Shown here: positions 6,801-32,456 of the stretch, piece by piece
Layout: each line of letters opens with the position of its first letter
How positions within the stretch are numbered: the first letter of the stretch is position 1
NCBI RefSeq assembly: GCF_964194025.1
Contig: NC_134478.1
Location: forward strand, 15,376,001 to 15,440,000
Source: Convolutriloba macropyga
Lineage: Eukaryota
Direction: 5' to 3'
DNA length: 64,000 nucleotides
Notes under the pieces: generated by a model
Told to the model about the DNA's origin: nothing
Database searches by the model: none
What the model saw: the letters and a program-made list of their open reading frames with translations, nothing else
Made by a program: the position numbers and the translations under genes

Positions 6801-7082
6801 TGTGGTTTCAACTTCGGGCTTTTTTCTGGGCATCGCGGTTTTTTGTAACTCATGGTGAGAGGTAATTATGTTTGAGAGCGCTTTTGACTATTTAAAACCT
6901 TTGTAGTGTTTTAGATGCAAAATAGGGCGTTTTTTGGCATTTTGCGATTTTAGACGTTGTTTAGTGGTCTTCCTACTCTTCTTCGCGTTGTATTCGACAA
7001 TATGAGGTCCTAATTACTTTTCGTCAGTTTTCTCAATAGCCGGGACAGTTTTTTTGCTCTGTCTTTTTTACTGTTTTGTTTT

Positions 7083-7866
7083 CAACCTCTCAACGGCTAT
7101 TATTTAGGCGCTCTCCTTTTTTTACAATTCAAAGAATTTGAATTGTATTGGGGCGCTGTCTTTTTTATTACAATTCAAAGAACTTGAATTGTATTGGGGC
7201 GCTGTCTTTTTTGAGATCTGTTCACACATTTTCGTGAACCAAATTTCTTTTTCTCGCTGGTGGTTTTTTTGTTCTAATGCGGCATTTTGACATTGATTTT
7301 CAGTTTTATATTTAAAATTTTCGATTGAGAGTCCGTTCTAGGTCTATTTTTTTGTTTAGTTAATGGAAATTTTTTGAATTTACGTCAGGACTGGTCCTGC
7401 TATGTTTTTTAATTCGCTTTACCTTTTGATCACGTTTTTCGTTTTACATAAGTTACGATTATCACGGCTGACTTCGGACTTACCTCAATCACTATTTCAA
7501 CTGAATGGATTTTAAATTCTTCCACGCATTGAGTTACGCAATGTGGTGAATACTGTCAAAGTCAGAAGAGCAGAATTAAAAGAGACGTGATAAACCGAAA
7601 AAGCCCGGCCCGGTCATTAAGTCATTGAGAATTAGGTTATCAAAGTTTCGTAGTGTTTGCTTGCTGACATTGGTATTAAGTTTATTAGCTTTCAGATTAG
7701 AAGCTGAATTAAATATAGTACTAGAATCTAACTGAAACTGCACGCCAAATTAAAACAGTTTTCGACACTGAAAAAAAAAACAGAAAAAACCGGTTAATTT
7801 GTCCTTTTTTTGTTGCAATCCTGATGTGCATCAAGCGCGTCAACGGCGGATATTTTTCGGCTATGT
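7083..7866 (+). mobile_element. Nested Helentron-like repeats (family C containing family B at 7122-7404); paralogous to 38161-40425 but without the innermost insertion
   Basis: Colinear with 38172-38255 and 39333-40425; TACAATTCAA left end, TTGAATTTAC + CAGGAC-TG-GTCCTG hairpin + CTATG right end; outer right end ACGGCGGATAT...CGGCTATG. Confidence 0.65.
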
Positions 7867-9099
7867 TTGTCTTTTTCTATTTTTGTTTATAATTACCGAT
7901 TAATATAAGTGAATTTGTTTTTTATTTCCGAATTTTTTTAACATCTTTTATTCTTTATCCTCTTCAAAATTGTTTTGTTTGTGCAATTGTTTATGTAAAA
8001 GTATTCTAAGGATTCTTATTCTTATTACAGATTGTTAATTATTTGAGCCACACCCTAGTTTTTCAATGTCAAGTGAAACTTTTGACGCAATTTTACTCCA
8101 ACTTTTGATCAGATTTTAAAAACCATTGGCAGCTTACACTAGGCTCTGGCCTTCCTTATAAAATGAGATTATAAAAAAATGGTAAGTGAGCTGATGTTTC
8201 AGTGAAAAGTTGATGAAAATCCATGTTGTAGTCAGTGATCAACAAATATGAGCCTTATCTCACCTTTAGACAGCTTTCTTTTTACGAGTTTATCAACTTT
8301 GCGTTGGGGTATCCTTATAGTTATCTCAATTAGTTTGATATACCAGAGAACTAGCCTAGGAGACCAACGTCTTAGTAGTATGGCGTCAAAGGAAGCTCGT
8401 TTACTTCGTAAACCGATAAGGTGGTAACCTACTTTTGACGTTCAGTTTATATTCAAGAACTAATATTGAGGTTTGAATGATGGGGGTTTAAATCATAATT
8501 GGCCATTATTCATAATGATAACTTGCACTGTATCTTTTGGTTGGAATTGATGTCAATCATGTAGACGATCAATAAAAAGGAGAACATTTTATTATATACA
8601 ATGAAATAAAAGAGTGTATAGGTTGACAAATAAAAGCCTTCATTTTTCAAATTTAAATTTTTTTCTTGAAGATGAAGTCACTTTTGCTATAATTGAGTTC
8701 CTTGAACATAAATGAAAGAAGAATCGCTTGAAGATTTCCTTAGTTTTATGGCAATTTTGCCATTTTTAAGATTTTGGGAATATTCATGGATTGCTAACCT
8801 TTTGAACATGAAATTTCCCAAATATTTTGATTTTCGTATGCTACAAAGAACCTTCTTTGACCGTTCTTTTATTTTTGATGCAGCATATTCTAAAATTTAT
8901 GTGCTGGGAGTTTTCTCGCAATTATTTTCCAAAATAAGAAAACTAAAAAAAAACTAATATCCTGTCTAAATGTCTGATAGGCAATATTTTGTGTTTTAGA
9001 TCCAGAAAACTATCGGATTTTTTTGTACGGTCCAATCTTATTCTTTTTCGAGTAAAGTTATCAGATTGTTGTTGATTAGTTTCAAGAAAACTACATAGT

Positions 9100-10230
9100 A
9101 ATGAATGCGACTAATGACAAAGGCATTTGGAGTTAAGAGTGTTAATTGTTTGGTTGTACCTCCAGTGTGGATTAAAGGGCTTCATATTATATTCCATTTT
9201 ATATAGATTGTGTTGACTTCATCTTTATCTGTTAAAAGTGATTCGATATGTACCCTAAGTATTTGTACCATTCGAACATTTTCCGAAAGTTTCAGATTTT
9301 CTATCAAAAAAGGAACTGTTTTCGAGGGGTTTAAAATTAGACTGTAATTTGCAAGAACAGAGTTCAAGGTTTTTCCAATGCTTCGTTTGCCTCTATCAAA
9401 GCATGTCTGGATGAAAAATAGGAGTATCGTCTAGATATTCCACTAATTGACAATTTTTTTAAATCTGAGATCATTTATATAAAAATTTTAAAAATTGGCC
9501 TAAAATCCAATCCGATTCAATGCCGCCAGCCTTTGTTTTCTGAAGACATTCGGACAAGTAGTGAGGTATCAATATTTAGGGGCTGGGGTTGATTCCTGTT
9601 TCTTCAAGCTTTGATGTTAAAATGTTGTGATTAAATGAGTCGAATGCTTTAGATTGATCTCGTAGTGCTCTTATTGTGCATTTGTTTTGTTAAATAAGAA
9701 ATCTTTTGTTTTCAGTGCTAACTATTACAGCCTCCATTGTGAATTTTTCGATCGAAAACCAGACTCAGTTTTTGAGAGGATATTGTTTTCCAATAAAATT
9801 TCATTTTATGAGCAAATTTCTATTTGATCTCGATGTAATCTTGCAAAAGCTTTGGGAAGTGAAATAGTTATTGACATAGCGTTGTATTTTTCAGGGAAAG
9901 GCGAGCCCCTTTTTTGTATGGCGGTACAATAATGGCTTTCTGTACCAAAGTAATTACCTAGTTCAGAGAAACGATTATTTAACAAATTAAAGATAATTTT
10001 AACAAGTTTGAAGGTAATTTAACAAAAGTGCGCAAAAGTGCAAATATAACAAAAGTTTGATCTGCTCAGAAATCATAAGTGTTAAAAGAAGCAGTTTTCA
10101 AACTCTTAAAAATCTAAAGGGTCACAATAAAAAAGTACAATTATATTCTTTGCTCTGGAAAACATATGCTATGCTTTTTGTTTTTCTTAATATTGGTTTC
10201 CAATAAACACAAACTGGAGGTTTCATTAAA
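9100..10230 (-). mobile_element. Highly decayed non-LTR (LINE) reverse transcriptase fragment
   Basis: Minus-strand remnants: QGS-like motif (~9590), YLDDT (~9430), N-x-L-x-LNPSKT and a (LG)VHI..LL-like motif in ORF 9182-9367. Confidence 0.6.
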
Positions 10231-10332
10231 CTTAGTTTTCATAGAAAAATTGTTGATCTTTTTTCTCATTACATCTTCAAATGAAAAAGCAGAAAGCAGA
10301 CGGAATCCTATTTTCAGAGGCGATTAATTAAA

Positions 10333-10516
10333 ATGATGGAAAATATGACACCGCCTAATGAGGACAAACCAGGTAAGAAACGGAAGACTGATGATGCACA
10401 AGATGAAGCTCCAAGTGCTACCAAGGGGAAGTTCCAGAAAAGCATCCAGAATAGCTTTGGCTTCAAAAATTCTTCAGACGTTTCCAGTGCTAGCAATATA
10501 ACAGATTTACTAACAA
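10333..10516 (+). CDS. HPF1: HPF1 (histone PARylation factor 1) coding exon 1
   Basis: ATG 10333, basic KKRK motif; donor GTGAGT at 10517 in phase 1 joins in frame to 10878 (A+GG=Arg); the true start is uncertain (possible acceptor at 10316-10317). Confidence 0.75.
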
Positions 10517-10877
10517 GTGAGTATAAAGTCTTCCTTGATTTGGCTTAAGACGTATTTTAAGGTTTATTCATTCAAATGAGCTCCTGTTTAATGCGATGTG
10601 GTCTCTCAATTAAGGATAAGTGTAGTTAATTAAGGTTGGACATGATATAGATTAATCTGCATAAAACAGATGAGCTAATTTTTTATTGATAAATATCAAC
10701 ATTGGATTTTGAGTGAGTCGATTACTCACTCAATACTTTTCAGTCACAAAACTTTGTGACTTCAATATCATTACAATACTCAATAACTCGATTTAGAGGA
10801 CTGTTATGAAAATTTTGCTCGGATTTGATTTGGATTGATGACGAATGTCAATTTAAAATTGGATGCAACGATTTTAG

Positions 10878-11058
10878 GGGTCAGCAGCGTATACAGAATG
10901 GAGTTTCCGCATGATTTTTCTCTACTTTGGAGATTTTGTGTGCAGATCTGTCCTTCGTGTCCTAAGAAAGCTCTGCTAGACCCGTTGGGAGTTTCACTAT
11001 GCGGACCATACGACATCTTGAGTGGCAAAGAGATTTCGGAACCTTTTCTACATTGCAG
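10878..11058 (+). CDS. HPF1: HPF1 coding exon 2
   Basis: YRMEFPHDFSLLWRFC...LGVSLCGPYDILSGK...LHCR matches the HPF1 pattern LPEDFYHFWKFC..LVGPYDILAGK..LHWR; acceptor TTTTAG 10877, donor GTTAGT 11059 in phase 2. Confidence 0.92.
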
Positions 11059-11134
11059 GTTAGTAGATAAAATATAGCACATTGTTTTTCCGTCTAAAAA
11101 TTTGCACATTCTTAAGATTTTAGACTCCTAGTTT

Positions 11135-12690
11135 TTGCAATTAAATTGCCTGATAAATGTTTGATTCTGTTGATTAAATATTTTCTTGGTTAACTATTGC
11201 TTGCCGAAAAGTTGGCTGATTTTGCAGTGCAACGTTTTTAGAGTTGTCCTCATTTGTATTTCAGCCCATGTCTAGTATGATTTTACCTTGCTAACTTCCT
11301 TGCTCTGAGCTGCCTCAATTTTATTGTCAATCGAGGTTCAATCTTTTTCAAATTTATTTGATGATTGATGCTTAACGCATTTAGCGATACTAACGATCAG
11401 AAGCTTTAAACTTTTTCGTAATTTCGTTTTTTGTTAATCCAGTTAGGTTTTCAAGTTAGTTTGTTTATCTGTTGTTAATATTTTATTACGCCTCAGCCAA
11501 GTAACTTTTTTGCAGTTGTAGGATATATGGCGATTATAAAATTGTTTTTACGTGAAGTAAATGAAAGAAAAAATAAAAGCGCAAGTGATGAGGTTTGTTC
11601 ACTGTGATATCCTTGGATATCAAGTAGTCCTGAAAAGGATTGTTTTGATGATCATAGAGTTAATAAACATTTGGTTGTTTTAAGTTACATTTCTTAACCG
11701 GTACATTTAAATTATAAAATTATATTTGTTGTTAAATTTACTATGCTGTAAAACTATTGTACTCAATGCCCATATATGCTTCTGTTGAATCCGGATAAAT
11801 GTTTATTGAATGCACATAACAAAAGTAACTCACTGAAAGCTATTAATTTATAAGAGAGAGAGAGAGAATAAAGTCTTGAGAACAGTTGGTTGTTTTAAAG
11901 AGAAGAAAACCGTTGCAATTAAATTGCCTGATAAATGTTTGATTCTGTTGATTAAATATTTTCTTGGTTAACTATTGCTTGCCGAAAAGTTGGCTGATTT
12001 TGCAGTGCAACGTTTTTAGAGTTGTCTCATTTGTATTTCAGCCCATGTCTAGTATGATTTTACCTTGCTAACTTCCTTGCTCTGAGCTGCCTCAATTTTA
12101 TTGTCAATCGAGGTTCAATCTTTTTCAAATTTATTTGATGATTGTTGCTTAACGCATTTAGCGATACTAACGATCAGAAGCTTTAAACTTTTTCGTAATT
12201 TCGTTTTTTGTTAATCCACTTATGTTTTCAAGTTAGTTTATTTATCTGTTGTTAATATTTTATTACGCCTCAGCCAAGTAACTTTTTTTGCAGTTGTAGG
12301 ATATATGGCGATTATAAAATTGTTTTTACGTGAAGTAAATGAAAGAAAAAATAAAAGCGCAAGTGATGAGGTTTGTTCACTGTGATATCCTTGGATATCA
12401 AGTAGTCCTGAAAAGGATTGTTTTGATGATCATAGAGTTAATAAACATTTGGTTGTTTCAAGTTACATTTCTTAACCGGTACATTTAAATTATAAAATTA
12501 TATTTGTTGTTAAATTTACTATGCTGTAAAACTATTGTACTCAATGCCCATATATGCTTCTGTTGAATCCGGATAAATATTTAATGAATGCACATAACAA
12601 AAGTAACTTACTGAAAGCTATTAATTTATAAGAGAGAGAGAGAGAATAAAGTCATGAGAACAGTTGGTTGTTTTAAAGAGAAGAAAACCG
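11135..12690 (+). repeat. 778-bp tandem duplication (11135-11912 / 11913-12690) of intron DNA plus the first ~310 bp of the 5' LTR
   Basis: TTGCAATTAAATTGCC at 11135 and 11913; LTR start at 11603 and 12381 (offset 778); scattered substitutions between the copies. Confidence 0.95.
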
Positions 12691-12750
12691 TGATCCACCA
12701 CTCCGAAGAGCTTTAAGAGCTCAGGCTGAAAGTTAGACAAGATTATTAGT
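12381..12750 (+). repeat. 5' LTR (370 bp)
   Basis: TGTGATATCC...GATTATTAGT; about 12 substitutions and 2 small indels versus the 3' LTR by manual count; TATA-like TTTATAAG and AATAAA (12645). Confidence 0.95.
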
Positions 12751-12763
12751 TGGTGACAGAAGT
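12751..12763 (+). promoter_or_regulatory. Primer-binding site, probably tRNA-Leu
   Basis: TGGTGACAGAAGT directly after the LTR; 12/13 match to TGGTGTCAGAAGT, recalled as the complement of the tRNA-Leu(CAA) 3' end. Confidence 0.7.
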
Positions 12764-13446
12764 AAAACGGTTGATCTTACCTTCCATTGAAACTTTAAAC
12801 TTCTGATCTTTTATTTCTCATTATTTCGGCCAAAGTCAAATTGTCATCATCGCTTTCATCAGAGAGCTAAAAATTCATTCAAATTATTAACAAGCCATGC
12901 AAGTCATGCAAATTAATATTTTCAAAAGCTAATTGTTGAAAAGATTGAAAAAACACTTGTTGGATAACTTGCAATTTGTATTATTTGTTGCTGTGGAAAT
13001 TCGTTATTGAGAATTATTAAGAACGATTTTTATTGAAAACGGCTCTTACTATAAACACGGATCATCAACAGACGACAACCATAAACAGGCACAAAATGAG
13101 AAGAGGCCACACAATAAAACAACCGGATTTGGGAAGAAAGGAAGAAAACAGTTGGCTAAGAACTGCAAAGGGCTGAGAACTACAGAGAACAGCCAGAAAC
13201 GGACTTCAAAAGCTAGTAAGTTTACAATGTAGTAAAACCAATTATCTCAGTGTAGTTTATATATGTCATCAAGTGCTTTCACTGTCAATCTATCCATAGC
13301 TAATCACTCCGTGCTGTCAGTGCTTAACTAGTCATCTTTTGAAACATTTAAAAGGGTTTTTGATAGGCGCATACAAGTAAAATACCGACTCTCTCCTCCT
13401 TATTTATTAGGATAAAAGTTAAAGAAAATATAATTTAACAAAACGC

Positions 13447-14686
13447 ATGGCTTAACCACATATCTCTCTCAGCCCATTCTCGGGCCTCGAACGTGAAAAT
13501 TGGCGCGAGTTTGAAGCTTTATTACGCAGTATCATAGCAGTAACAGCAGTCCCTAATGATCAACAAGCAAACTTCTAGCGACTTCACTTAAAAGACGGAG
13601 CCCTTAGATTTTTTCTAAAACTAGCTGAAGCTACTCAAAACAACTCAGAAAATGCACTCACAGCACTAAGAAATCAGTATTGTGACCCAAATTTTAGAGA
13701 AGTTCATGCAATAAAGTTAGAGAACTTTAAGTTTATACCGGGAAAAACAACGCCAGAGGACCTTCTAGTACGGATTCAAACATGCGCACATCAAGCTTAC
13801 CCAGATCATATTTTGCCAGTTGTAGCGCCAGCTGCAATTGACGCAGATAGTCCTAGGTTTGACAGCGAAACCGCTGTAAATGCGGAAAGGTTAGCAAGCG
13901 CAGGCAGAAACAGAGAAAGTCAAATTAAAAGAGCATTTATCAGAGCAATGCCAAACTGGCTACGCTTTAAACTGTTTGAACTTCCTGAAAATGCTACCCC
14001 ACAAGAAGCATGTAACGCAGCCCGAAAAAATTTAGTTTTGAAGGACCTTTGTCCCACAGATGAATGGTCACCAGGATCAGTTCGCGAAATTCAACAAGGA
14101 GTTACTGAGAATTTAGTAAATGCGCTCACAAAAATGGGCCAAGCACAAGATTCAATAGACAAAAATTTCGGAACTGACACGTAATTTTGTTGATAGTCAA
14201 ACCCGACAAGAAGGAAGCTCGCAGAAAAACATTACTCAGAACATACAAGGTGGCGGAAAATTTTTTAAACCGCGAAATTGGAATAACTCAGGTCAGCGTT
14301 CGTTTAGACCAAATAACAATCAGTGGGGCTACCAAAATTATCAATAAAATACAAATAGACAAAAACTTCCAAGAAATAGAAACCTACAATGGCAATTTGC
14401 ATTCCAAACATCTCCCCAGTAGTTTTACCAGAACCAATTTCCAGCACCAAATCAATATAATCAACAAACAAGTCAGAGCCAATTTTCCGAGCAAAACCCC
14501 CAGGTTTCCCAAAGTTTCCAGACAACAGATCAGAGTTTCCACTACCCACATGTGCAATCGGCACCAAAAATATGCTTCAAATGTGGATATCCCAACCATT
14601 TAGCAAAGGACTGTCAAACTTCAAGTAACCAAAATGCTAATCAGTACAAATCTGAAACGTTACCGTTTCCGATGCAAAAAAACTAA
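13447..14686 (+). pseudogene. gag: gag (premature stops and frameshifts) with C-terminal CCHC zinc knuckle
   Basis: MA*PHISLSPFSGLERENWREFE..LHLKDGALRFF capsid-like start; CFKCGYPNHLAKDC at ~14572-14613; stop TAA 14684-14686. Confidence 0.9.
14677..14686 (+). promoter_or_regulatory. -1 ribosomal frameshift slippery site A_AAA_AAC at the gag/pol junction
   Basis: CAA AAA AAC TAA ends gag; the -1 frame (from 14683) is open without stops into the protease ORF at 14833. Confidence 0.85.
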
Positions 14687-17600
14687 CTAAGCCACAGCCA
14701 AATGAGTCCAATAAAAAACAAAAGAATATAAAAAAAACTCAAAAAATTCATCATAATCATCATGTAGAGTCATCATCTATAAATGCTGTTATAACGTTAG
14801 AAGGAGAAGAATTCTATGTTCAAATTAATTTCTTGAAAAATTTTAAACGTCGAGCACTACTTGATACAGGAGCAACAACAAGTGCATTGTCGGAGTCAGT
14901 TTTATTGGAGCTACAGAAAAACAGCGTAATAAATAAAAGCTCTTATTGTGAACCAAAATTCAGTCAAGTTAAAACAGCATCAGGCCAAGAAATGAACATT
15001 GATAAACAAGTGTCAGTCGATTTCCACATCGGAGACTACAAGTTCGCAGAAGACTTTTTAGTGCTACCTAAAATGAATAACATAATTATTGGAAATTCAT
15101 TTTTCATAAAATGTAATATCCAAATTTGAGACAAAATACTCAAGTTTGAAGACGTCTGTTCATTTGAATGAACTCAAACCTGTATCAGGCAGACGTAGAA
15201 TATTGAAACCTTGCAAGTTCAATTTAACTGCTGCAAGAAAAATAACTATTGAAGCACAGTCACAGAGAGTCTTAGAATGCAAATTTGAGGACTCACAGCC
15301 TGAAATCAAACATTGTAGTAGAGTCGTTAAGCCTCAAAAACAGTTTGAAACAGATAAAGAGTTAGCTCAGCAATAGTAACAACAACTGAGACAAACACAG
15401 TTTTTCTCCCAGTTATAAATTTCAACACTCACCCAATTACAATAAAAATAAACACACCAATAGAACAATTTAAAGTTTTAAACTTCCAGGAGTTACAAAA
15501 ACTTCAGCATGTTAGTGCAGATACTATACAATTAGCAAAACTGAGAGATGAATCAAACTACTTAGCAGAAGTTAACAAATTAATAGAAATACCAAAAGCG
15601 CAACAAATTGAGAAACCAGCACCAGAATACGAGAAATTTTGGTTTCCAACTCCGGAAAACTGTCCAGACATAACCTGTCTATCAAATTGGCAAAAACAGG
15701 TATATGATGAAATAAGTGAGTACAGAGAAAGAGAAAAAATTAACCCAATAGAAAATCAGAGAGATAGGAATGAGTTTTTACAACATTTTTCTTGGCAAGA
15801 CTCAATCTTATCAGACACAGAGCGTAAACAAGTTGAACAACTCCTAGTAGAAAATTTTGACGTATTTGCTAAACACAGATTTGATGTTGGCTACAACTCC
15901 GAACTGCAAATAAAATTGACACCATCACATGAGTTACCTGTGTATTTACAAAGCCTTCACACTCCAATTCATCTTAGAGACGAACTTCTGACTGAATTAG
16001 CTTTGATGCACTACTTTGGACTAATAACAACTTTGTCAAACTCAAAGTACGGAGGTCCTATTTTTGCACAACGTAAAGAATCGGGTAAACTCCGCATTCT
16101 CATTGATCTCCGTCGAATAAACCATTTACTACGAAACGACTACCTAAATTTAAAGTTTCCAATTTCAGATATGCAAGATGCAGTTAATCATTTTGCTGGA
16201 AAGAAGCTATTCTGCAAGCTTGATTGCTCTCAAGCTTACCACTGTGTACAGATGGCTGATGATGTTTCTGTACAACTACTATCATTTAACTTCGCATCTC
16301 GAACTTACGCATATAAGTGTCTCGCACAAGGATTAAGCAAATCAGTAACTGGATTCAGCGCTTTTATTAGACATTACCTGGATCCTTGCCTAACAGCAAA
16401 TGTGTGTACCCAATATATGGATGACATAGGAAGTGGAGCTGAAATTGTTACCGAACTTCTGAGAAATCTTGAGCAAATAATTGATTGTGTCAGAAAATCG
16501 GGGTTAGAACTCTCACCCAAAAAATGTATATTTGGAACAACCAAAATTAAATTTTTGGGAAACATACTTACGCCAGCTGGAATTCAACCAGAAAGTAAGA
16601 AAATAGATAAATTTCTGTCAAAAATGAAAATGCCACAGACCGTAAAGCAGGTAAAGAGATTGATTGGATTTGTCCAGTTCTTTCGCAATCATATACCTAA
16701 GCTAAATGAAGTCTTGATACCTTTTTACGAACTTCTCCAAAATTCAGCATTTTTTGCAACAAGTGATCGTCATCAAGAAGCTCTAGAACAGATACGTAAT
16801 GCCTTGAGGAAAGCAACAACTGTTGTACTCAGATTTCCAAAACCAGGGCTCCAGTATGTTATATTATATGACGCAAGCTACCATGGAGCTGGATACGTAC
16901 TTCTAACTGAAGATTATCTGAAAGATGACAAACACAAAGAACAGAAAACATATGCTCCAGTTTATTTCGGCTCGAAACTATTTAACAAAGCACAGCTTAA
17001 ATTGTCAATCTTCTGTAAAGAATTTCTTGCATTATATTTCGCATTGGAAGAATTTTCTCACTATATTTGGGTAGCAGAAAAGCAAGTTTTAGTTTTCTCA
17101 GATAATAAAAGCCTAACCCAGTTCTTCAAGGCATGAACACTTCATCCTTCGCTTTGGGGATACTTGGACAGAGTACTAGCGTACAATATTGCCTTAGCAC
17201 ACATTCCAGGTAAAGCAAACGTTACCTTCAGAGCAACATTACCCAAGTGATGTAATGCAAATTGATATTATAGGTCCGTTTGACAGTAATCAATGCAGAT
17301 TTGCACTAACAGCAGTCGATGTATTTTCTAAGTACATTTTTGCCATTCCACTTTCAAACGCAGATGCACCAACAGTAGCAAAGTCCTTAGTTTCCATTTT
17401 TTAAGACATAGTTACATACCGTACATGATAATAGCAGATTTAGGCTCAGTTTTCACTTCTGACTTTATGCATGAATTAGCGAGTCTTCTCGAGATCAAAC
17501 TAAGACATGCAACCCTTAAACATGCACAATCAGTGGGAGTGGTTGAGCGATCTCACCTTTCTATGAAAAGAATCCTTAGATTGGATTCAAATCAAACAGG

Positions 17601-19441
17601 CAGTGACTGGCATAAATGGTTAGACATAGCAGTGTTTATACATAACACATCTTACTCCTCAGCTATAGGGTGCTCAACAACCTTAGTCTTTCATGGCCGA
17701 GAACCTCATAAAACACTGGATGTTAGATTTAACATCAAAGCCATTCAAGCAGCCATGCCAAGTTCAGACTTTCTTGTTACCTTACAAGATGCAATGACAC
17801 AACATTTTTCTCGAGTCAAAGAGAAACTTGTCACAATGTATCACAAGAAGTTATTACGATGACAAAGCGGAAGCTAAACCCTTAGAATTATTTTCCTATT
17901 GTCTTTTGTTTAATCCGCGCTTAGTAAATCAATCTGATCTTAGTCACAAAGCAGTCCAAATTTGGCTCCCGCTATACAGAGTTGAAAAAGTTCTTACAAA
18001 CTCTAACTATCTGATCCGAAAAGTTGAAACGCCATTTGCGCAATGTGTTCATAGGATCAGAATACGACCAATAGTACCACAGACCAGAATAGACAATATT
18101 GATACATTAACAACCAAATTTGTTGCAGACCCCAGTTTGAGCAAATTTAGACAAGAACCTCAACTTTTTGACGAAAAAGTTGGGAAATTGTTCGAAGAAG
18201 AGTACTATGAAGATGGAACAACAAGCAGTAACGAAAACGGTCTTAACACCCCTTCAGCGCAAGTATATTGGAGTTATCCTATAGGTCATCCAGAACCAGC
18301 ACTACCAAACGGCCCTGGAACACCACCAAGGGCACCAAGTCCCCCAAATATTTTTGAACCGCCGGAAGTACAATCTGACGAAGAACTAGTCCTATTTGTT
18401 GACGATGCAGCCCCTGCTGAACCATTTGAGGATCTATCAGTTGCCAATCGTAGTATTGATGAGTCTGAGGAGCCATTAATAACAATACAAGGCCATAACA
18501 ATGTATTGAAAATTGAAAGTCCAAGATCAACAAAATCAAAATTCCCATTAGAGATGCTAACTGGAGCAGAGGACCTGATTCACCGGTCAGCACTACGCCA
18601 ACCCCATCACCAGTGGCTAGCAATCTTCGTAGGTCGTCGCACATACCCAAAATGCCAATACCAATCTACACAGAACCAAAAATTTCAAAGGAAAAAAGAG
18701 TAACATTCAAAGAGCCTTCAACTTCGAAATCAAACAGAGGAGATAGATCTCGTAAAACTCAAACGGTAGATGAAGCACTGAGCGAATTTGGTATGCGAGA
18801 CTATAGCTCTATAGGTGATCTAGCAAAAACTATAGAAAAACGTAGAAAAGAAATGGAAAACGAGAAAACAAACAACCCGTCAACTTTGATAGAATCAAGT
18901 TCAAAGCAAGATACTTCAAAAAAAAACAAGTCCAAAAAAGCAAACTCAGTAGTTCTACGCAATCTCTGACAAAAGGGGACTACCCTTGTTTTGAGCTATG
19001 CAATATAATTTGCATGAGAGCGGAAATGAAAGAAATAAACGGCAATATTGTACAAAGTACATTTTCTGATTCATTTTTTTCGAAACTTGGCAAAATCTTG
19101 CAAAATTTTGTCCTAACTTGGTAAATAATGACGTACCAACTAACAATAACCTTGCACCCGGCTCAATACGTGTTCATTACGATAGTTACTCGGACCGATT
19201 TGTATATAATCTCACCATAAAACAAAAAGTTTCGAAAAATGAGTTGATAGCAAAAGTTTACCAATCGCTCATTTTACTAAGAAACCATGCCGTAGAAAAT
19301 CGTTTGACCCATATTTTTGTACCAAGACTAGGCATTGATCTCGACGTAGTGCCCTGGCAAGCAGTGAAGCAATTTTTTCAGAATATCTTTGGACAAACAG
19401 CGCTAAAGGTTGTGATAGTTTTTGCAACAGCAATTATTTGA
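14683..19441 (+). pseudogene. pol: pol: aspartic protease, RT, RNase H, integrase core, long low-complexity C-terminal extension ending in a macrodomain; stops, frameshifts and an internal deletion
   Basis: LLDTGA; LRILIDLRRIN, KLDCSQAYH, QYMDD; YDAS..KEFLAL..SDNKSL; integrase IDIIG / ADLGS / VERS (D,D,E). Confidence 0.93.
19026..19441 (+). pseudogene. TARG1/OARD1 (Poa1p-like) macrodomain
   Basis: MKEINGNI (beta-1-like, 19026, frameshifted), then RFVYNLTIKQK...QSLILLRNHAVENRLTHIFVPRLGIDLDVVPWQAVKQFFQNIFGQTALKVVIV, aligning by eye to TARG1 [45 protein letters not shown]...FEATDIKITVY. Confidence 0.88.
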
Positions 19442-20645
19442 ACTTGAATATCTCGCAAACTTAACAACAATTTCGATCAAACATTAGAAAAACATGGCCC
19501 CCATGGCTTCATCTTATTATGTGTCAATAATTACAGCCAGTTTGTACCATTTGGGCAAATCAATTAAAATATCAAAAAATCACAAAACTGAAATTTTTGA
19601 CCAAACTTTGAAAAGCAAATAAATTACAACTGATAGATAGATGACCTCAAAAAAGCGCTTAAATCTCCTTACAATATGCCGTGGGGAAGCAGGGTAACAA
19701 AAAAATGCAAAAGTTTGTGTCAAAAACTCAAGAAAAACGAAAAAACCACCCAAAATGTAGAAAAAACGCAAAAACTGCCCGTTTTTGCCCAAAAATACGC
19801 AAAGTTCTATGTGAAGGCATCCCTGTAGGAACACCAAACCCTACCATTGTTCCTGTGACTGCCTGCCACGTTTGCTGAAATTTGAACAATAACTTACGAG
19901 TTATTAGCTTTTTGTCAAAAAGAGAAAAAAATGGAAAAATTAGAAATTTAGGATTTTTCCATTGGCTATTTTCCCAACTTATAATCACACTAGAGTCCCG
20001 TCTTGAACCATACTAAAAGGAATTAGGAACAACAATTCCCTATCTATTATAAGTTAGGAGAACTGACCACCAAAAATTGCCAAAAATCGGATCCTAAAAA
20101 GTGCGATTTTCAATGCAAAGGTAGCCCTAGAAAACTGAAAAACAAATCACCATTTCTGACTACACTCAAATTAAGTTCACATCAATACCTCACTACATGC
20201 AAAAAATCTCCTTAAAATTCGCTTTATTTGCAGAGTTATACATCTTTCGTGGTCAAAAATTTTCAGACCTCAAAAATCGCCATTTTTGCCGAATTTCGAT
20301 ATCTTTACAACCAATATAAAAAAACACATTTTAGCTTGTTTTTTTTGGCCCAGTATCGAACTTGGTTAGCACAAAATTAAAGCCACACCAGTGTAAGGTC
20401 AAATGTTGTTAATTTTTTGAATTTTGAACTTTAATCGGATGTCCAAATTTTGACCCCGAAACTTGGGTGAAAAATAGGCAAATTGCAAGTTATCTCACAA
20501 GTTACTGGTTAAATCAACGCAAAAACCACATCACAACTACGCTCTAATCTGATTGTTAACTAGAAACTCAGTTAGCATGCAGTTAAAGCCCACCATCAAA
20601 GCAAATTTTCACTCCAACCTGTTAATACTAGATGTGAAAAATAGC

Positions 20646-21266
20646 TTAAATTTTGCAACTTACAAACAGAGAAGCTACAGGCCCTTCTACACGGCGAGTT
20701 TGCCTCCGTTGTTGAAACCTACCCTGAGTTATAGCCTTCCTCGCTTTTTCTTGCTGTTGGGGGCTAATAAATGTAGAGACTGAGAGTAACGAAGTCCATT
20801 GGTTGTCTTGCGCAGGAGTCAAAACACAATGGTAACATCCAAACGGTAAATAAATAGTGTCACCAGGAAGCTGCAACCCCTGCGCGCAGCTAGTTTTGAG
20901 CTTTGGTAATAACATTAAAAGGCTCTCAAGAGTTCCACTTAGCCTCTCGAAGTCACTGGCTAACTTTCCAGGAGAAAGAAAAATCCATAACTTTTTTGAG
21001 GTGCCGTGAAGGGTTATAAAAGCGTCTGCAGGATCTTCCCAGTCGCAATGAAAACTTGTATACTGCTTGCCGCAGCTTAAAACATTAAACCCAAATGACC
21101 AGGGTGCTTTTGTGTAACCATCAGGAAGTGAAAAATTAATAAAACTCTCCGTTTTCAAAGGTAAACAATCATTATAGATAGGAGTTTTAAAATAACCAAT
21201 TTTCTCTTGATTGCATGTTAACTTCTTTAGAACTGTCGAAAATTTTGATGCACTATACAAAGACTG
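20646..21266 (-). CDS. JmjC-domain 2-oxoglutarate/Fe(II) dioxygenase, terminal exon (antisense cargo of the LTR element)
   Basis: YTSFHCD (HxD), GTSKKLWIF, LQLPGDTIYLPFGCYHCVLT (distal His); acceptor GTCGTTTTAG at 21267-21268. Confidence 0.88.
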   Translation of the reverse strand, partial: QSLYSASKFSTVLKKLTCNQEKIGYFKTPIYNDCLPLKTESFINFSLPDGYTKAPWSFGFNVLSCGKQYTSFHCDWEDPADAFITLHGTSKKLWIFLSPGKLASDFERLSGTLESLLMLLPKLKTSCAQGLQLPGDTIYLPFGCYHCVLTPAQDNQWTSLLSVSTFISPQQQEKARKAITQGRFQQRRQTRRVEGPVASLFVSCKI

Positions 21267-21346
21267 CTAAAACGACAAACAAAAACGATGATAAATTGCC
21301 TAGCCCATACTAAAAATCTTTAAAAAAATTGAACTTCTATACTTAC

Positions 21347-21507
21347 ATCTAAATTTTTGTCCGTGTAACGAATTAAAGGCTCGCGAATAATAAAGGGCTG
21401 ATTTCGTACAATTTCATGCCCCAAGCCTTCCCTTACAGTAGGAATTTCACTTCTTACAGTCTCAGAAACGGCCTCAAGTTTATCCGTTGGATCTCAAATA
21501 CGCCAAT
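21347..21507 (-). CDS. JmjC gene upstream exon (one in-frame TGA at 21494-21496)
   Basis: ..EIPTVREGLGHEIVRNQPFIIREPLIRYTDKNLD then GTAAGT donor (21346-21341), phase 0, in frame with QSLYSASK; candidate acceptor CTCTAG at 21508-21509. Confidence 0.7.
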
Positions 21508-22358
21508 CTAGAGTAGTAGCGAAAAGAAGCAAATAGCCAAGCCAAATTAACTAAACACACGAACACAATTGCTCAGAAATTTCAAATTTCCCCGCATGTA
21601 ACGATAAAACAACACACGTTACGTTAACGCAACAGACTCAGTACAAGTGCTTAATAATGACCTCATGTAAGATTAAACCCATCATACGTACTTAACAACA
21701 AACATGCTGTATACTGCTTGTAACTACTTAACAACTTCGTGGCTAAATTTAAATGCAAGAAACATACGCAGTCAGAATCTAAATTTGTCATCCTATTTTC
21801 CCAGTCTCCGGATCAATGATCGCATACTTCTTAGCGCTGCAGAAAGAATTATCAACAGAGGCAATAGCAAAATGAGCACGATCCAGGAAAAGTCATAAGA
21901 CTGTTCTGATTGCACATCAGCTGGAAGCGCAGCAACAGGACATATTGGAGCTTGATCCCGAGTGGAAAAAATTGTCAAGCCTGATTGATCCCATTAATGG
22001 GTTCCATTTAAGCAACAGAGTACGCCGAATACCCCAAAGGAAATGTTGAAACTTTTTTAACTGAAAAACTCAATCCACTTTTAGCTACCAATTTCTTCAG
22101 ATCGGAACGAAGTCTACTGAAGTGAACAAAATAAATTTAAGTAGAAAAGATATGGAAAAAGGAAAACGCTAGAAGTGATTAAAATTTATTATGACAAAAC
22201 ACTCAGTGATAAACATTGCAAAACAAAGCACCAAAAACAAATCAAGATCACAGGATCATCAGTAATCTCTGTTGCTCTCATCACAATCATCCGAATAGTT
22301 TTCTATCATTTGTCTCATGGTCCACCTAAGCAGTACGAATATAAATGTTTTTAGGAAA

Positions 22359-24667
22359 ATGCGCTTAACCCGGTTGGTGGGATGCAGCATAATTGCTGCA
22401 ATACTGTTTGAAATCGATAAAAACATGGCATTCACGCAAATTGAGGAAAATCGAGAAAACGCAGAAAGTTTGTCAAAAGGAGTAATATTCCACGAAAATT
22501 CGAAGATTCTCCTAGTGGAAAAATGTGTTCCTGTTATATTTCTCGTTCCGTTCCCGCAGTACCATTTTACAGTGAAGGCAGATCTTGAAAAACTGCTAAG
22601 AAAACTTAAAAACATGTGGCATAAACCATCTCTTTTCTGTCCTCTAAATTTTTCCACAAACTTTCAACATAATACGACTGAATTCAACGTGGATTGGATT
22701 CTGCGAAAAATTGAGAATGAATTGGCAATTGCTAGAACAGAGGTTAGCTACCTGCATAAGGAAACACAGCATTTCTTGGAGTCAATACAAGACACAGTTC
22801 CTAATCGCAAAACGAGCAGCGCCAGTTCTGGCAGGATTGGCGGCAATCGGACTTTTTGGAGGAAGAATTGCCTTCGGATCATCTGGTAGCTGCGGAATTA
22901 TTGGAGTATTTGGAGGTTGTCACGATAAATCGAAGAAAAACGCAGAAAACATTCAAAAACTGGCCGACTATACAGAACAGATAGCGACCTACGTCTCACT
23001 TGTAAAATCAGAGACAGACGACAAATTCTTTCTCATTTCGAATGAACTGGCCACTCAGCACAAGATTCAAAATGAACTTATTGAGAACCAGAACACAAAC
23101 TGGGAAATAATTCAAAAGCAGTTCGATTTTTTCGAGAAAAATGTTAGATTGCTTCAAGATTGTGACCAATTACTTTTTTCAAATCAGCAGATAAACTTTA
23201 ATTTTGACACTTAGGCATCGTTACTCAATATGATATACTCAGATGTCAGAAGCTATAGAGCTGCACTTACTGGATTTTGCATGAATCTACTCAATTCAAT
23301 ACCAACACTGTTACAGAAAAGATTACCGATGTCCTTAGTACCTCGAGATTACCTAATGAACATTCTAGACTATGTTGCACGCGAACAGATGAACGCTCGT
23401 GACCGACTGACCCTAGCAATTCCCATGGATGATCTCCTGTCTTACTATAATGCAGAACTGTTGACGGATGCACTATCGATTAAGGAAGGGCTACTTTTAA
23501 CCCTTGCGATCCCGTTGGCTTCTCGTCAAACAGTTTTCACAGTTTTTACTGCAAAAATTGTACCAATGTCACAAAAAGACACTGGACGTGCAATTAGATG
23601 GAAAATAGAAGCTCCATACTTAGCCGTATCATAGGACTCTGTGGAAACAGCAGTGCTAAGCAAAGATCAACTAGGAAAATGTTTAGGATCTTCCAACTAC
23701 AGAATTTGTCATGAGACAATTCCAACGGAGTTGGGACACTCCTCATGTCTAGCCACACTTTTTTTGGGAACGACTATGGACGCCTTACTAACGTGTCCAA
23801 CCGAAAATGTTTCACCAGTGATAGAGGCAGCAGAAAACCTAGGATATGGTATCTGGGTAATCTTGTCAGCGACGGACACATTTACCATGCGAGAGTCTTC
23901 CATGGATAGTTCAAACGCTTTCCAAGTCAGAACTTACCCTGGTTGCCAAATATGTATTATCGCATTGGAATGTGGTAAGCAAATTACGACTCCACACTTG
24001 AAAATTAAGATCTGACCTAGGAAGCTGTCACAAGATTCCAGCAATTAAAATTCAAGTAGAACTTTCTGACCCTCTCCAGCATTTATTGACTGAAGCGCCA
24101 GAAATAGACCAACTCCCATATTTCAACAATAAAGATCAGGCCAGTCTTACTCTTATTAGACAAGTGCAAGAAAAATTAGTAAAAATACCGTCAATGAGAA
24201 AAACAGAAAACCTTGCACAGATAGCCAAGCCAATCGCCATTCAAATGACACATTTGAAACCTGTCTTGAGTAACACCTTTGAGAGCTACATGCCGTTTAA
24301 ATACGCGCTCCTTATGGGAGTGGTATCATTCTTAGTTTCATTGGCCTTGCACTTACTATGCATGTATCTTTATAACAGATTTAGCTCTGTACGCCGTTTA
24401 GTCCCGAACTTTATGAAGGTAGGTAAACAAAAGGTTCCAGTCAAACCAATGGTCGTAGTGGACAGAACTCACTTTCGAAAAATAGCAGGAGAGTGAGATA
24501 AGTGGGAAAAGCGTGCACATGTTGTCATGAAAAAGTCCAAATCGGAAAACAGCCTTAGAGCCCCTGACAATGAAAGGGAGGAAGAGCTTACGGAGCGGAG
24601 AAAAAGTCTATGCTCGGTATATACAAAAGGTGACTCCATAAACGACTTCGAAGAAGTCAATGTGTAA
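22359..24667 (+). pseudogene. env: env, class I fusion glycoprotein (baculovirus-F/errantivirus/paramyxovirus-F-like), disrupted
   Basis: Signal-like MRLTRLVGCSIIAAILF; basic cleavage site NRK(fs)R followed by fusion peptide AAPVLAGLAAIGLFGG; heptad repeat; Cys-rich region; TM YALLMGVVSFLVSLALHLLCMYLY; cytoplasmic tail to TAA 24665-24667. Confidence 0.88.
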
Positions 24668-24835
24668 ATTTTTCATTTATAAAATGTCTATCCTTCTATA
24701 TTTGAAACTTTCTGTAAATCATTCATTAATATTGCAAAAAATTTGGACTCAATTAAGCTGTGGTAAATTGGTGTAAAGACATATCTGTAGCCGTATATTC
24801 TTAATTTTTTTTTGAAAAAATAATATGCTGAAAGC

Positions 24836-24849
24836 AAAAAAAGAGGGAG
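24836..24849 (+). promoter_or_regulatory. Polypurine tract
   Basis: AAAAAAAGAGGGAG ending 4 nt before the 3' LTR. Confidence 0.85.
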
Positions 24850-24853
24850 CTAG

Positions 24854-25219
24854 TGTGATATCCTTGGATATCAAGTAGTCCTAAAAAGGATTGTTTTGAT
24901 GGTCATAGAGTTAATAAACATTTGGTTGTATTAAGTTACATTTCTTAACCGGTACATTTAAATTATACAAGTATATTTGATGTTAAATTTACTATGCTGT
25001 AAAACTATTGTACTCAATGCCCATATATGCTTCTGTTGAATCCGGATAAATATTAAATGAATACACATAACAAAAGTAACTTACTGAAAGCTATTAATTT
25101 ATAAGAGAGAGAGAGAATAAAGTCTTGAACAGTTGGTTGTTTTAAAGAGAAGAAAACCGTGATCCACCACTCCGAAGAGCCTTGAGAGCTCAGGCTGAAA
25201 GTTAGACAAGATTATTAGT
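24854..25219 (+). repeat. 3' LTR (366 bp)
   Basis: Direct repeat of 12381-12750, preceded by a purine tract. Confidence 0.95.
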
Positions 25220-26538
25220 TCCACGACTTATGTTAACTGAAATTTTTTGAGTGCACAGATTTGTTTTTGTGCTCTGAGCGAGCTACTAATAACTTGTGTT
25301 AGTGGGAACATAGTTCGCGGGAGGTTAATGCAATTAAAGTTTGAGCTGAACCCGAGCTCGAACTGCCAGCGGTTTCCGAGAACTTTTTCTAGCCTATTCA
25401 GACCCAAATTTTGCTGCTCCAAAGTAGCATATTAGTTTTTGGTTTATTTTTTCAGTAGTCATTGGACTTGTAAGAATTTTTTCTAAAGTCTTGCCTAAAG
25501 TGTCTAGTTTTTTTGCCAAGAAGTTTACCCAGTATATAGCTCAAATTATGCTTGGCTTTATTTTCTTACAGTATTGGAGAAAGTGTTGGAACAATGTTAT
25601 CTAGTTTGTAAAATGACATTTAACTACTTCAGCATTCAAAATAATTTTAAGTAGTTGTTTTGATTGCGCTGAAACGAACGCATTGTATCTTCTGTTGATC
25701 AAAGTGATTTTGTGGATTCATTTTATTGTGTCGTCTGTAGTCTTTCTTGAACATGAACTTCTGAATTTTGAAAAGAACTGTTTTTGTATAGAAGGTAGAG
25801 GCATATAACAGACCGGTTGATAAAAATTAATTTCCTCTGAGTTTTTAAAGTTTCCTTCGTACTTTTGCTGATGGTCTTTAAAAAAATGTCAATGCTCCGT
25901 AAACAGCGGTGAGTTGAGTTGAACGTGAAATCTGCCACGTCCATCTCGCCTCTATAGTCTCAAGTAATTATTCGAATTGTGAATTCAATAGTTTGTGATC
26001 AAGTTAAATAGTTTATGGGGGACTCAAATCACTGCTTACGGAAAACTGGCAAAAATGTTTATGCATTTTCTGCCGAAGTACTTATGGAATTCTTCTAGAT
26101 TGTCTCCTACAATTTAAACTCCATCTCTTTCCACTTGATTCATATGAAATTGGAAACGGTCCTCAATCGGAATTGTACCAAAATACTTTTTGAAATCGGA
26201 ATTGTACCAAAATGCTTTTTGAAATCTGGTCAAATGCAATTCATCTGTTGAATTCCATTTTTCGTATCTATTCCATTTCTAAAATTTACGCGTGAGAGAT
26301 CACCCTGAAAGATCATGTTCGGACACTCTGTTTTTTTTGGGACGAAGTGAACCAGTTAATTCTGCAATGAACTTGATATTTTATGGCTTTGCAATATATA
26401 ATTTCATATAATTATAAGGCAAATACTTAATTTCGCAGATTTAAGTTTTTTGCGCTTTTCTTTTTATAAATTGTTAAAACTCACGTATATTTCGCTACAT
26501 AACAGATCCCAATTTTTATTGAGTTTTTTTTGCTTCAG

Positions 26539-27280
26539 ATACTACCTTGATCCACCTGAAGTACAAACTGTCTTAACAGCTTCAAACAGCAGTGAGCAAC
26601 TACATTACGGCTACTTCCGAGATGATCCTAACAAAATGCCAGCTTTTGTTGTGTCCGCGAAATCTTCCAAAGACTGTGTTCTAAGATACGCTGGTGACAA
26701 CTTACTCGAATTTATCTACAAAGAAATCAACTTAAAATTATCTAAGGTTTCAACTGACAGCTCTGTTTCTAACGAGAGAAATAAACTAACAAATTTGAAG
26801 TCAAAATTGGAAAAGTTTGCTGCTACTTGTGATCCCGTTGTGCAATTAAACTGTAAGGAAAAGAATTTCCGAGATCGCAAAAGGAAATCTCAAGGAACGA
26901 CTTTTCACAAATTGGGAATTTCCGTTTACGTCAAAAATGACATTGGTTATCGCCCTATTCATCACGATGACGCAACATTACGTAAGATGATGCAAAAAGT
27001 TGCGCAATGCGAATCGCAGTCTGAACGAGTTGCTGCATTTGGACCATTACATGAACAAATAACCTTCGTTCAATTTGCGAATGATGAATCAGATTTTGGT
27101 ATGGGCTTGGAATTGGGGCTGAATTTTTTCCTCCAGGGAGCGGAATGTTTTCACAAAGCGGCGGGGAAGCTACTGCCTACTGCGTATAAGTTTTTGAAAA
27201 GAGATTTGTACGCCGAAATAATTGAGAAACATCTAGCCAAGCGCGAGAAAGATCCAACCAATATCTTGTATCTCAAGTAA
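26539..27280 (+). CDS. HPF1: HPF1 coding exon 3 (terminal)
   Basis: RYYLDPPEVQT..HYGYFRDDP..TFHKLGI..KNDIGYRP..TFVQFANDESDFGMGLELG..AEIIEKHL; the ANDE catalytic Glu is present; acceptor TGCTTCAG 26538 is phase-compatible with exon 2. Confidence 0.96.
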
Positions 27281-32034: not shown

Positions 32035-32456
32035 GTATGTGACTTGAGATCAGAAATCCCAGATTCTTGCGATCTCGAATGTGACGTGATATCCTAATTG
32101 TTCTTCAAAATTGATTTGTCAATAATTGTTTGTCAAAAGTAAGTTCGCACCCCCTTAGTCTCACGTATCAGATCAGTTTAGTCCATATTGTTAATCTGAG
32201 TCTTTCCTATTACCCATTATACCCCCCTCGTCATTACCTTAAGCATACGATAAGGAGGGTATAATGGGAAGGACGCCTTTCCTTTTTATCAACGCCCCCC
32301 CCCCCCCCCCCCCCCCAACTAAAGTCCTCTCATTTTGGTACTCATTTTGGTAAAATTACGTAAAGCGGGGGATCCAAAGGTTCTAGTCGCACAAAGCTTT
32401 AATGACGAAATGTGCTGATTGTGCGGTGTATTTATTTGCTTTGCTTGTGTGGTTAG

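Follow-up and report, generated by a model that had tools for sequence, protein, structure and literature searches.

An envelope-bearing Ty3/gypsy retrovirus-like family with a TARG1-type macrodomain in Pol and an antisense, intron-containing JmjC gene

In a 64,000-nt stretch of the Convolutriloba macropyga genome (NCBI RefSeq assembly GCF_964194025.1, contig NC_134478.1, positions 15,376,001 to 15,440,000; subsequently called the window) we identified a degraded, non-autonomous copy of an env-bearing Ty3/gypsy (errantivirus-like) endogenous retrovirus family. Its members, including nearly intact relatives, carry a TARG1/OARD1-type macrodomain as the last domain of the Pol polyprotein and a separate small JmjC-type (Fe/2-oxoglutarate oxygenase) gene with its own intron on the opposite strand between pol and env. 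Env-carrying Ty3/gypsy elements are already known, but no description of this combination was found in the literature that could be searched, which did not extend to Repbase and Dfam. The initial annotation had described one LTR-bounded unit with gag, a −1 frameshift, PR-RT-RH-IN-macrodomain, an antisense spliced JmjC and an F-like env, and this observation was confirmed by our analysis. The unit is 12.8 kb long; its features and those of its 5′ flank are the following (window positions):

11135-12691, no strand: tandem duplication of 778 bp (11135-11913 and 11913-12691, 98.6% identical), which copies 468 bp of upstream flank plus the first 311 bp of the 5′ LTR and is either a post-insertion duplication or an assembly artefact
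12381-12750, plus strand: 5′ LTR, starting TGTG
12751-12768, plus strand: primer-binding-site-like sequence starting TGG, directly after the LTR
13447-14600, plus strand: gag, broken by 1 frame change; approximate start, placed by alignment to the gag ORF of a related copy (L006)
14656-19441, plus strand: pol with PR, RT, RNase H, IN, a long C-terminal region and macrodomain, broken by at least 8 frame changes, 1 in-frame stop and one ∼0.8-kb internal deletion in IN
14845-15105, plus strand: aspartic protease domain
16072-16563, plus strand: reverse transcriptase domain
16765-17073, plus strand: RNase H domain
17240-17398, plus strand: remnant of the integrase catalytic core
18990-19438, plus strand: TARG1/OARD1-type macrodomain; approximate start, with 19190-19417 as the part aligned to TARG1
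19442-20645, no strand: T-rich spacer between the pol stop and the JmjC ORF, 74–82% identical between subfamilies, which could be the 3′ UTR or further exons of the antisense gene
20646-21478, minus strand: JmjC gene with exon 1 (at least 21478-21347), intron (21346-21267, GTAAGT...TTTTAG) and exon 2 (from 21266 to the stop at 20648-20646); a possible second donor sits at 20663
22359-24496, plus strand: env, broken by 2 frame changes and 2 in-frame stops, with a fusion-peptide-like hydrophobic stretch at 22798-22875 and a membrane anchor at 24290-24376; approximate start, placed by alignment to L006
24836-24849, plus strand: polypurine-tract-like run, 4 bases upstream of the 3′ LTR
24854-25219, plus strand: 3′ LTR

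The LTRs were compared via blastn and lie at 12381-12750/1 and 24854-25219/20, with 371 aligned bases and 95.7% identity. No tRNA gene was found in the window with which the primer-binding-like site could be compared. The 5-mers flanking the LTRs match at 4 of 5 positions, although the 5′ flank is also part of the tandem duplication. In order to identify the encoded domains, single-frame pieces were searched against Pfam and PDB. The protease (gag-asp_proteas 30 bits, RVP 22.1 bits), RVT_1 (E 4e-20) and RT_RNaseH_2 (E 5e-15) were found in the order typical for Ty3/gypsy elements, followed by a remnant of the integrase core (rve, E 1.8e-5, below cut-off). The internal deletion of about 0.8 kb relative to sister copies removed the integrase zinc-binding domain and the start of the core; the zinc-binding domain is present in the related copies L001, L002 and L006. 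The gag pieces gave no Pfam hit, whereas the 413-aa gag ORF of L006, which is 94–95% identical to them, carries a CCHC zinc knuckle that scores just at the threshold (zf-CCHC, 20.9 against a 20.8-bit cut-off). The numbers of frame changes and stops in gag, pol and env of this copy are greedy lower bounds that do not take homology into account. The −1 gag/pol shift cannot be read in this degraded copy, but it fits the frames of gag and pol in L006 and in a better-preserved relative of a more distant family, L005.

Other copies lacking the segment 19026-22000, with the cargo as a secondary insertion in this copy, had been named beforehand as a refuting condition, and we searched for further copies. 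Four of them (L001, L002, L003 and L006), located on different contigs, share the same order of genes, with the segment in the same place and orientation; the refuting condition did not occur within this family. The cargo is therefore a feature of the family that is present in five copies and three subfamilies. L006 has open gag, pol-macro and JmjC frames: its Pol is one uninterrupted ORF of 1812 aa from PR to the macrodomain, and its two-exon antisense JmjC gene starts with an ATG. In contrast, L005 has the macrodomain but no JmjC. L005 carries a near-identical LTR pair and an open gag and env, so JmjC is dispensable.

The macrodomain of the window matches TARG1/OARD1 (PDB 4j5r) with an E-value of 4e-8; E-values of 4e-10 and 6e-9 were obtained for a sister copy (P0006) and the C-terminus of L006 Pol, respectively. 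A library search yielded 152 hits, and 101 of the 150 listed match Pfam Macro, although the window piece itself is below the Pfam cut-off (16.3 against 22 bits). In the alignment of these 150 relatives a Lys and an Asp are nearly invariant and 41 residues apart, the same spacing as in TARG1, in which Lys84 and Asp125 of the human protein form the catalytic pair; both residues are present in the window piece. However, only the C-terminal 76 residues align to TARG1, with about 30% identity, and the N-terminal half was not aligned by sequence. In L005, Pfam Macro covers positions 9–113 of 118 at 18.3 bits, which is below cut-off; the domain lies there in the same frame as RH-IN, with 4 stops in 1328 codons, although L005 shows only 52–60% RT identity.

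The JmjC assignment of the window piece taken alone is weak (E 0.03–0.07): with the Pfam JmjC_2 and JmjC models it scores 14.2 and 14.1 bits against cut-offs of 22 and 24 and does not pass. Two relatives pass JmjC_2, namely L001 with 23.7 bits and L006 with 22.3 bits. The family profile hits KDM7A, PHF2 and PHF8 at E-values of 0.0017–0.005, and all PDB matches to JmjC are weak. The HxD...H metal-binding triad aligns to that of PHF8 and KDM7A: the second His is invariant in all rows and the His-x-Asp is kept in every row that covers it, across variants only 52–56% identical. Furthermore, a Thr three residues before the first His and a Lys in the following strand align with PHF8 and KDM7A; in PHF8 these residues bind 2-oxoglutarate. 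We found no PHD finger or other reader domain that would aim a demethylase at chromatin in exon 1, exon 2 or the neighbouring minus-strand pieces, and the sequence thus resembles the catalytic domain of the PHF2/PHF8/KDM7 group without sharing its domain architecture. An AlphaFold model based on a 6-row alignment was unusable (pLDDT 32). The JmjC family looks small, with 5 clusters found. The splicing claimed by the initial annotation is right for at least one intron: its GT...AG bounds are shared by five copies while its sequence and length differ. In the window copy the large exon is open, but we found no in-frame ATG in the first exon.

Next, we compared substitution patterns between copies. 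For JmjC, pN is 0.27–0.32 between subfamilies against pS of 0.86–0.97, with synonymous sites saturated and protein identity maintained at 52–61%; within a subfamily dN/dS is 0.6–0.9. These values indicate that JmjC has been kept by purifying selection. The window and L006 are 96.7% identical in gag-RT (dS 0.055), yet their JmjC exons are only 61% identical with saturated synonymous sites, which shows that the JmjC module has been exchanged between otherwise near-identical backbones. The macro piece of the window, on the other hand, shows more non-synonymous than synonymous change against L006 (dN 0.041, dS 0.013 over 117 codons).

The env pieces gave no direct Pfam hit, and neither did seven full-length relatives. 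However, the window pieces are 54–60% identical to one family member, P0286, which passes Pfam Baculo_F (29.6 against 24.1 bits) in exactly that region, so that the homology to glycoprotein F is transitive only. In total 404 relatives were found, in clusters of up to 102 members, and intact relatives encode an Env of about 750–790 aa. Each of five intact relatives has one furin-type R-x-K/R-R site followed within a few residues by a hydrophobic stretch, resembling a fusion peptide, plus a C-terminal membrane anchor. The window copy keeps the two hydrophobic stretches but no strict cleavage motif. Weak profile matches (E 0.07–1) fall on the fusion-peptide and heptad region of influenza HA2. An AlphaFold model of the relative P0166 was unusable (pLDDT 41), and the F-like env is thus supported by transitive homology and class I fusogen features of intact relatives but not by a fold.

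The interpretation given in the initial annotation, a once possibly infectious retrovirus-like lineage with accessory anti-silencing or anti-defence genes, is partly supported: its structural reading holds and is in places strengthened, whereas its functional reading remains inference. Our analysis demonstrates the degraded env-bearing Ty3/gypsy copy, the presence of both accessory genes as family features, the selection on JmjC and the exchange of its module. Everything concerning activity and function, including ADP-ribosyl hydrolysis and demethylation, is inferred from the known biochemistry of the protein families. In this view, which we hold with moderate confidence, the macrodomain would be delivered with Pol and remove ADP-ribose placed by host PARPs on element proteins, nucleic-acid ends or nearby chromatin, blunting a PARP-based restriction. 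The JmjC protein would be made from its own antisense transcript and remove repressive lysine methylation (H3K9me2-like) at proviral chromatin, opposing small-RNA-guided heterochromatin. The antisense orientation would explain how the intron survives retrotransposition, as it is not an intron in the sense-strand genomic RNA, and the F-type Env would allow cell-to-cell spread in intact members.

Alternatively, the cargo enzymes could be real and selected but serve replication rather than counter-defence. The macrodomain might bind or process ADP-ribosylated chromatin or nucleic-acid ends to guide or complete integration, and the JmjC might be a protein hydroxylase acting on Gag, Pol or a host factor. 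The best Pfam match is JmjC_2, a family that includes ribosomal protein hydroxylases, no chromatin reader domain was found, the macrodomain is physically part of Pol next to integrase, and 11 of the 150 listed macro relatives are fused to DNA-ligase-3-type BRCT domains, a DNA-repair context. However, the solved structures closest to the JmjC profile are histone lysine demethylases. We consider this possibility less likely than the first, although the present data do not separate the two readings. That both segments are dead passengers, captured host fragments without function, is very unlikely. The degradation of this and several other copies and the substitutions in the macro piece of the window would fit, but the JmjC identity retained at saturated synonymous sites, the conserved metal-binding residues and intron bounds, and the macrodomain kept in frame in the open L006 Pol and persisting in L005 argue against it.

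An insertion or assembly chimera peculiar to this copy is refuted by the four other loci; nothing was found in its favor, although the 778-bp duplication nearby shows that the locus has some local rearrangement or an assembly problem. The third ORF could in principle encode a membrane glycoprotein other than an F-type class I fusogen, as direct Pfam hits and a usable model are missing, but this is unlikely in view of the Baculo_F match of P0286 and the layout of the intact relatives. A more far-reaching and tentative reading, rather unlikely on present evidence, is that this lineage encodes its own erasers of host marks, an ADP-ribose hydrolase built into Pol and a separately transcribed histone-type demethylase, both acting against PARP-based restriction and small-RNA-guided heterochromatin, with the JmjC module swapped by recombination between lineages like an arms-race cassette. 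To our knowledge this would be the first transposon-encoded JmjC anti-silencing enzyme in animals.

Animal transposons are usually seen as passive targets of piRNA-guided heterochromatin and other host restriction, and known transposon-encoded countermeasures are few and come mostly from plants. Macrodomains are established counter-defence tools of several RNA virus families but are not, as far as we could find, described in LTR retroelements. A family that keeps a TARG1-type macrodomain in Pol and a JmjC-type gene under purifying selection offers a natural system for asking whether ADP-ribosylation and lysine methylation restrict retroelements in invertebrates and whether the elements fight back. 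The antisense gene would also be a clean natural example of how orientation protects an intron through an RNA-copying cycle, and the two deeply diverged JmjC versions on near-identical backbones show modular exchange of accessory genes.

The closest described elements are the ‘ancient errantiviruses’ of non-insect metazoans (Chary and Hayashi, eLife 2026, PMC13524379), which share the LTR-bounded gag-pol-env order, the Ty3/gypsy-type PR-RT-RH-IN, an F-type envelope gene downstream of pol and the occurrence as multi-copy families in invertebrate genomes. That paper does not mention a macrodomain, a JmjC or an antisense gene, and the element studied here has roughly 3 kb of extra cargo between IN and env. 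The Drosophila gypsy/ZAM errantiviruses (Metaviridae) likewise have a gag/pol frame shift and a baculovirus F-derived env as a third ORF, but are not known to carry accessory enzymes of this kind. Human TARG1/OARD1 (PDB 4j5r, 2eee and others) is the best solved match of the macrodomain, but it is a free-standing cellular protein. The JmjC profile is closest to PHF8, PHF2 and KDM7A (PDB 3kv9, 3ptr, 3k3n), whereas the element-encoded protein is small (about 250 aa in two exons in L006) and lacks a PHD finger. A functional analogue is fission-yeast Epe1, a JmjC protein that opposes H3K9-methyl heterochromatin (PMC7192584). Accessory genes beyond gag-pol-env are also carried by other mobile elements: VANC of the Arabidopsis VANDAL elements (PMC5735166) counters host epigenetic silencing, but is a DNA-binding protein of a plant DNA transposon and not an enzyme that erases a mark. 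The extra ORFs of bdelloid LTR retrotransposons are of the GDSL esterase, DEDDy exonuclease and dUTPase types, with no macro or JmjC mentioned in that paper (PMC5408684). Complex retroviruses also encode spliced minus-strand genes, such as HBZ of the deltaretroviruses, an unrelated protein; the JmjC gene lies inside the element between pol and env. Finally, 2 of the 150 listed macro relatives (P0026 from GCA_917208135.1 and P0145) are Ty3/gypsy-type Pol proteins in which a TARG1-like macrodomain sits between RNase H and integrase and not after IN, and these different positions suggest separate acquisitions.

In order to define the element in the window we first compared its ends. A pair of direct repeats aligns over 371 bases at 95.7% identity. 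The repeats start with TGTG; the 5′ copy is followed directly by a TGG-starting primer-binding-like site and the 3′ copy is preceded, 4 bases upstream, by a purine run. The flanking 5-mers match at 4 of 5 positions. A separate 778-bp tandem duplication (98.6% identity) copies upstream flank plus the first 311 bp of the 5′ LTR and is either a later, post-insertion duplication or an assembly artefact. No other copy of the element lies in the window, and no tRNA or Rfam match was found there.
12381-12751: 5′ LTR
24854-25220: 3′ LTR
11135-11913 and 11913-12691: tandem duplication (11135-12691 overall)
11603-11913: partial extra LTR left by this duplication

The coding content of this copy was analyzed using only single-frame, stop-free pieces. 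Pfam searches identified an aspartic protease, RVT_1 and RNase H as well as a remnant of the integrase core, whereas the gag pieces gave no family hit. The piece just before the pol stop hits Pfam Macro only weakly (E 0.0099), but it matches human TARG1/OARD1 structures at E 4e-8. On the minus strand a 206-codon open piece shows weak hits to JmjC_2 and JmjC (E 0.03 and 0.07) and weak matches to PHF8/PHF2/KDM7. The copy is clearly dead: a greedy lower-bound count yields 1 frame change in gag, at least 8 frame changes and 1 in-frame stop in pol including macro, and 2 frame changes and 2 in-frame stops in env. Comparison with sister copies also shows one internal deletion of about 0.8 kb, which removes the integrase zinc-binding domain and the start of the core.

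We were then interested in whether the macrodomain and the JmjC gene belong to the family or only to this copy, as the initial annotation had named the absence of the 19026-22000 region from other copies as evidence that would count against its reading. The JmjC piece finds five related proteins, all from ENA assemblies, and we examined their loci together with one env-derived locus (the relatives come from ENA assemblies ERZ25071359 and ERZ26859043). The sister copy L002 is about 93% identical to the window over the whole element, including the cargo. L001 is 90-92% identical in gag-pol and env, but has a much more diverged cargo segment which is itself tandemly duplicated: a duplication of about 3.6 kb (reverse-complement coordinates about 7270-14540) comprises the integrase C-terminal region, the macrodomain and the JmjC gene, and L001 therefore holds two JmjC copies that are 94% identical at protein level. 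L003 is 84-87% identical, and L006 is 96.7% identical in gag-RT. All have the order gag, PR-RT-RH-IN, macro, antisense JmjC, env. The observation made in the initial annotation held, and a secondary insertion of the cargo into this copy was rejected; its interpretation is supported in part, namely in its structural reading, while an anti-silencing or anti-defence function remains inferred.

L006 matters most because its frames are open. Its gag is 413 aa long with a CCHC knuckle, and its Pol is one 1812-aa ORF (1613-7048, +) running PR, RT, RNase H, integrase zinc domain, integrase core and a long C-terminal region. The TARG1-like segment ends 7 residues before the stop (E 6e-9), so that the Pol-macro fusion is seen directly in a natural sequence. 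A weak dUTPase-like Pfam hit between protease and RT (Pol residues about 132-225, E 0.027, below cut-off) had no match among solved structures and we do not claim it, although dUTPase at this position is known in some retroelements. The env ORF of this otherwise well-preserved relative (10001-11998, +) is 665 aa, about 100 aa shorter than other open env relatives (743-788 aa), and the C-terminal env piece of the window aligns to it only at its two ends. In L005, a more distant family from another assembly, RT is 52-60% identical at protein level and the LTRs are 98.5% identical. Its macrodomain lies in the same frame as RH-IN, with only 4 stops in 1328 codons. Gag and a 748-aa env are open, but there is no JmjC and no room for one. 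The macrodomain is thus the more widely shared feature of the two, whereas JmjC is restricted to a subclade and is dispensable.

Next, we characterized the macrodomain in a library-wide search with the macro piece of the window, which gave 152 hits. Of the 150 listed, 101 match Pfam Macro at E 0.001 or better. A Lys and an Asp 41 residues apart are nearly invariant in their alignment and are present in the window piece; this spacing equals that between Lys84 and Asp125 of human TARG1. Two hits (P0026 and P0145) are Ty3/gypsy-type Pol proteins with the macrodomain between RNase H and integrase. A macrodomain inside Pol therefore occurs in at least one other position in other genomes, but it is rare (2 of 150 representatives).

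The alignment of the JmjC family keeps His-x-Asp and a second His across variants that are only 52-56% identical. A profile of it hits KDM7A, PHF2 and PHF8 at E 0.0017-0.005, with the triad, a Thr and a Lys aligned. JmjC_2 is above the Pfam cut-off in L001 (23.7 bits) and L006 (22.3 bits), but not in the window copy. A structure prediction for the JmjC exon of the window, based on an alignment of 6 rows, reached a pLDDT of only 32, which made a fold search meaningless. Between the three allele groups (window/L002; L001/L006; L003) pN is 0.27-0.32 while pS is 0.86-0.97, which is saturated; within groups dN/dS is 0.6-0.9. That pattern fits purifying selection during the history of the family and neutral decay after insertion.

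Upstream of the large exon there is a short conserved coding block (PFIIRE... motif) that ends in GT, and an intron of about 80-100 nt (21346-21267 in the window) ends in AG exactly at the start of the large exon. These bounds are shared by the window, L002, both L001 copies, L003 and L006, while the intron sequence and length differ. In L006 the first exon starts with ATG, but in the window copy no in-frame ATG was found. A second GTAAG donor at the end of the large exon is shared by four copies but not by L003, so that a second intron is possible. The 1.2-kb T-rich spacer at 19442-20645 gave similar protein-level matches between copies on both strands, so that it may or may not hold further JmjC exons; the JmjC exons were searched one by one. 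An intron on the antisense strand is expected to survive retrotransposition because it is not an intron in the sense-strand genomic RNA, which we infer from how such elements replicate. The JmjC gene also appears to have been exchanged as a module. Window and L006 differ by dS 0.055 in RT-RH, yet their JmjC exons are 61% identical with saturated synonymous sites, and no nucleotide similarity is detectable across 20307-22372. Deeply diverged JmjC versions therefore sit on near-identical backbones, which points to recombination between lineages.

Direct Pfam scans of the env pieces of the window and of seven full-length env relatives gave nothing. However, a search from the longest env piece of L002, and then from a family profile, found 404 relatives; all of the 120 listed come from ENA assemblies. 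Open env proteins of 743-788 aa occur in clusters of up to 102 members. Among the env proteins scanned, only one member, P0286, passes Pfam Baculo_F (29.6 against 24.1 bits), and the env pieces of the window are 54-60% identical to it across the matching region. Five intact relatives each have a single R-x-K/R-R site followed within a few residues by a hydrophobic stretch, plus a C-terminal anchor, and the window keeps the two hydrophobic stretches. The family profile gives only non-significant matches to the fusion-peptide and heptad region of influenza HA2, and the predicted structure of the env relative P0166 (29 rows) reached a pLDDT of 41, too low for a meaningful fold search. These data support a class I, F-type envelope protein by sequence only. 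A different neighboring element at the L003 locus (316-2268, +) has a small ORF with a weak Pfam Monjiviricetes_fusion hit, and the same genome therefore holds other elements with F-type envelope remnants.

The analysis demonstrates the architecture, its conservation and the selection on JmjC, whereas the function of both enzymes is inferred. We favor the reading that the macrodomain would reverse host ADP-ribosylation on element components or nearby chromatin, and that the JmjC protein, made from its own antisense transcript, would remove repressive lysine methylation at proviral chromatin. While we are highly confident of the architecture, this functional pair is tentative and less likely than not. 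The main rival is a role in supporting replication, in which ADP-ribose binding would guide integration and the JmjC protein would act in protein hydroxylation.

The backbone fits the env-carrying Ty3/gypsy elements recently shown to be widespread in metazoans (PMC13524379). That paper does not mention macro, JmjC or antisense genes, and neither do papers on extra ORFs in LTR retroelements (PMC5408684, PMC12440569). Full-text literature searches, which did not extend to Repbase, Dfam and GyDB, found no description of a macrodomain or JmjC in an LTR retroelement. Functional analogues are the macrodomains of RNA viruses, the VANC anti-silencing proteins of plant VANDAL transposons (PMC5735166) and the JmjC anti-silencing factor Epe1 of fission yeast (PMC7192584).

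Outside the element the window contains further long ORFs and one masked or unassembled stretch. The neighboring ORFs for HPF1, EloA-BP1 and an RNase T-type exonuclease fit a metazoan. The HPF1 ORF lies 1.2 kb downstream of the 3′ LTR; a cofactor of PARP1/2 sitting next to an element that carries a predicted ADP-ribose hydrolase domain is probably coincidence.
26450-27277 (+): 276-codon ORF with a strong Pfam HPF1 (histone PARylation factor 1) match (228 bits)
30281-32044 (+): ORF with an ElonginA-binding-protein-1 (EloA-BP1) domain (E 2e-33)
40711-41298 (+): ORF for an RNase T-type exonuclease (E 1.5e-9)
51229-53262 (+): 678-codon ORF with no family match
1268-1417: run of 150 N (assembly gap or mask)
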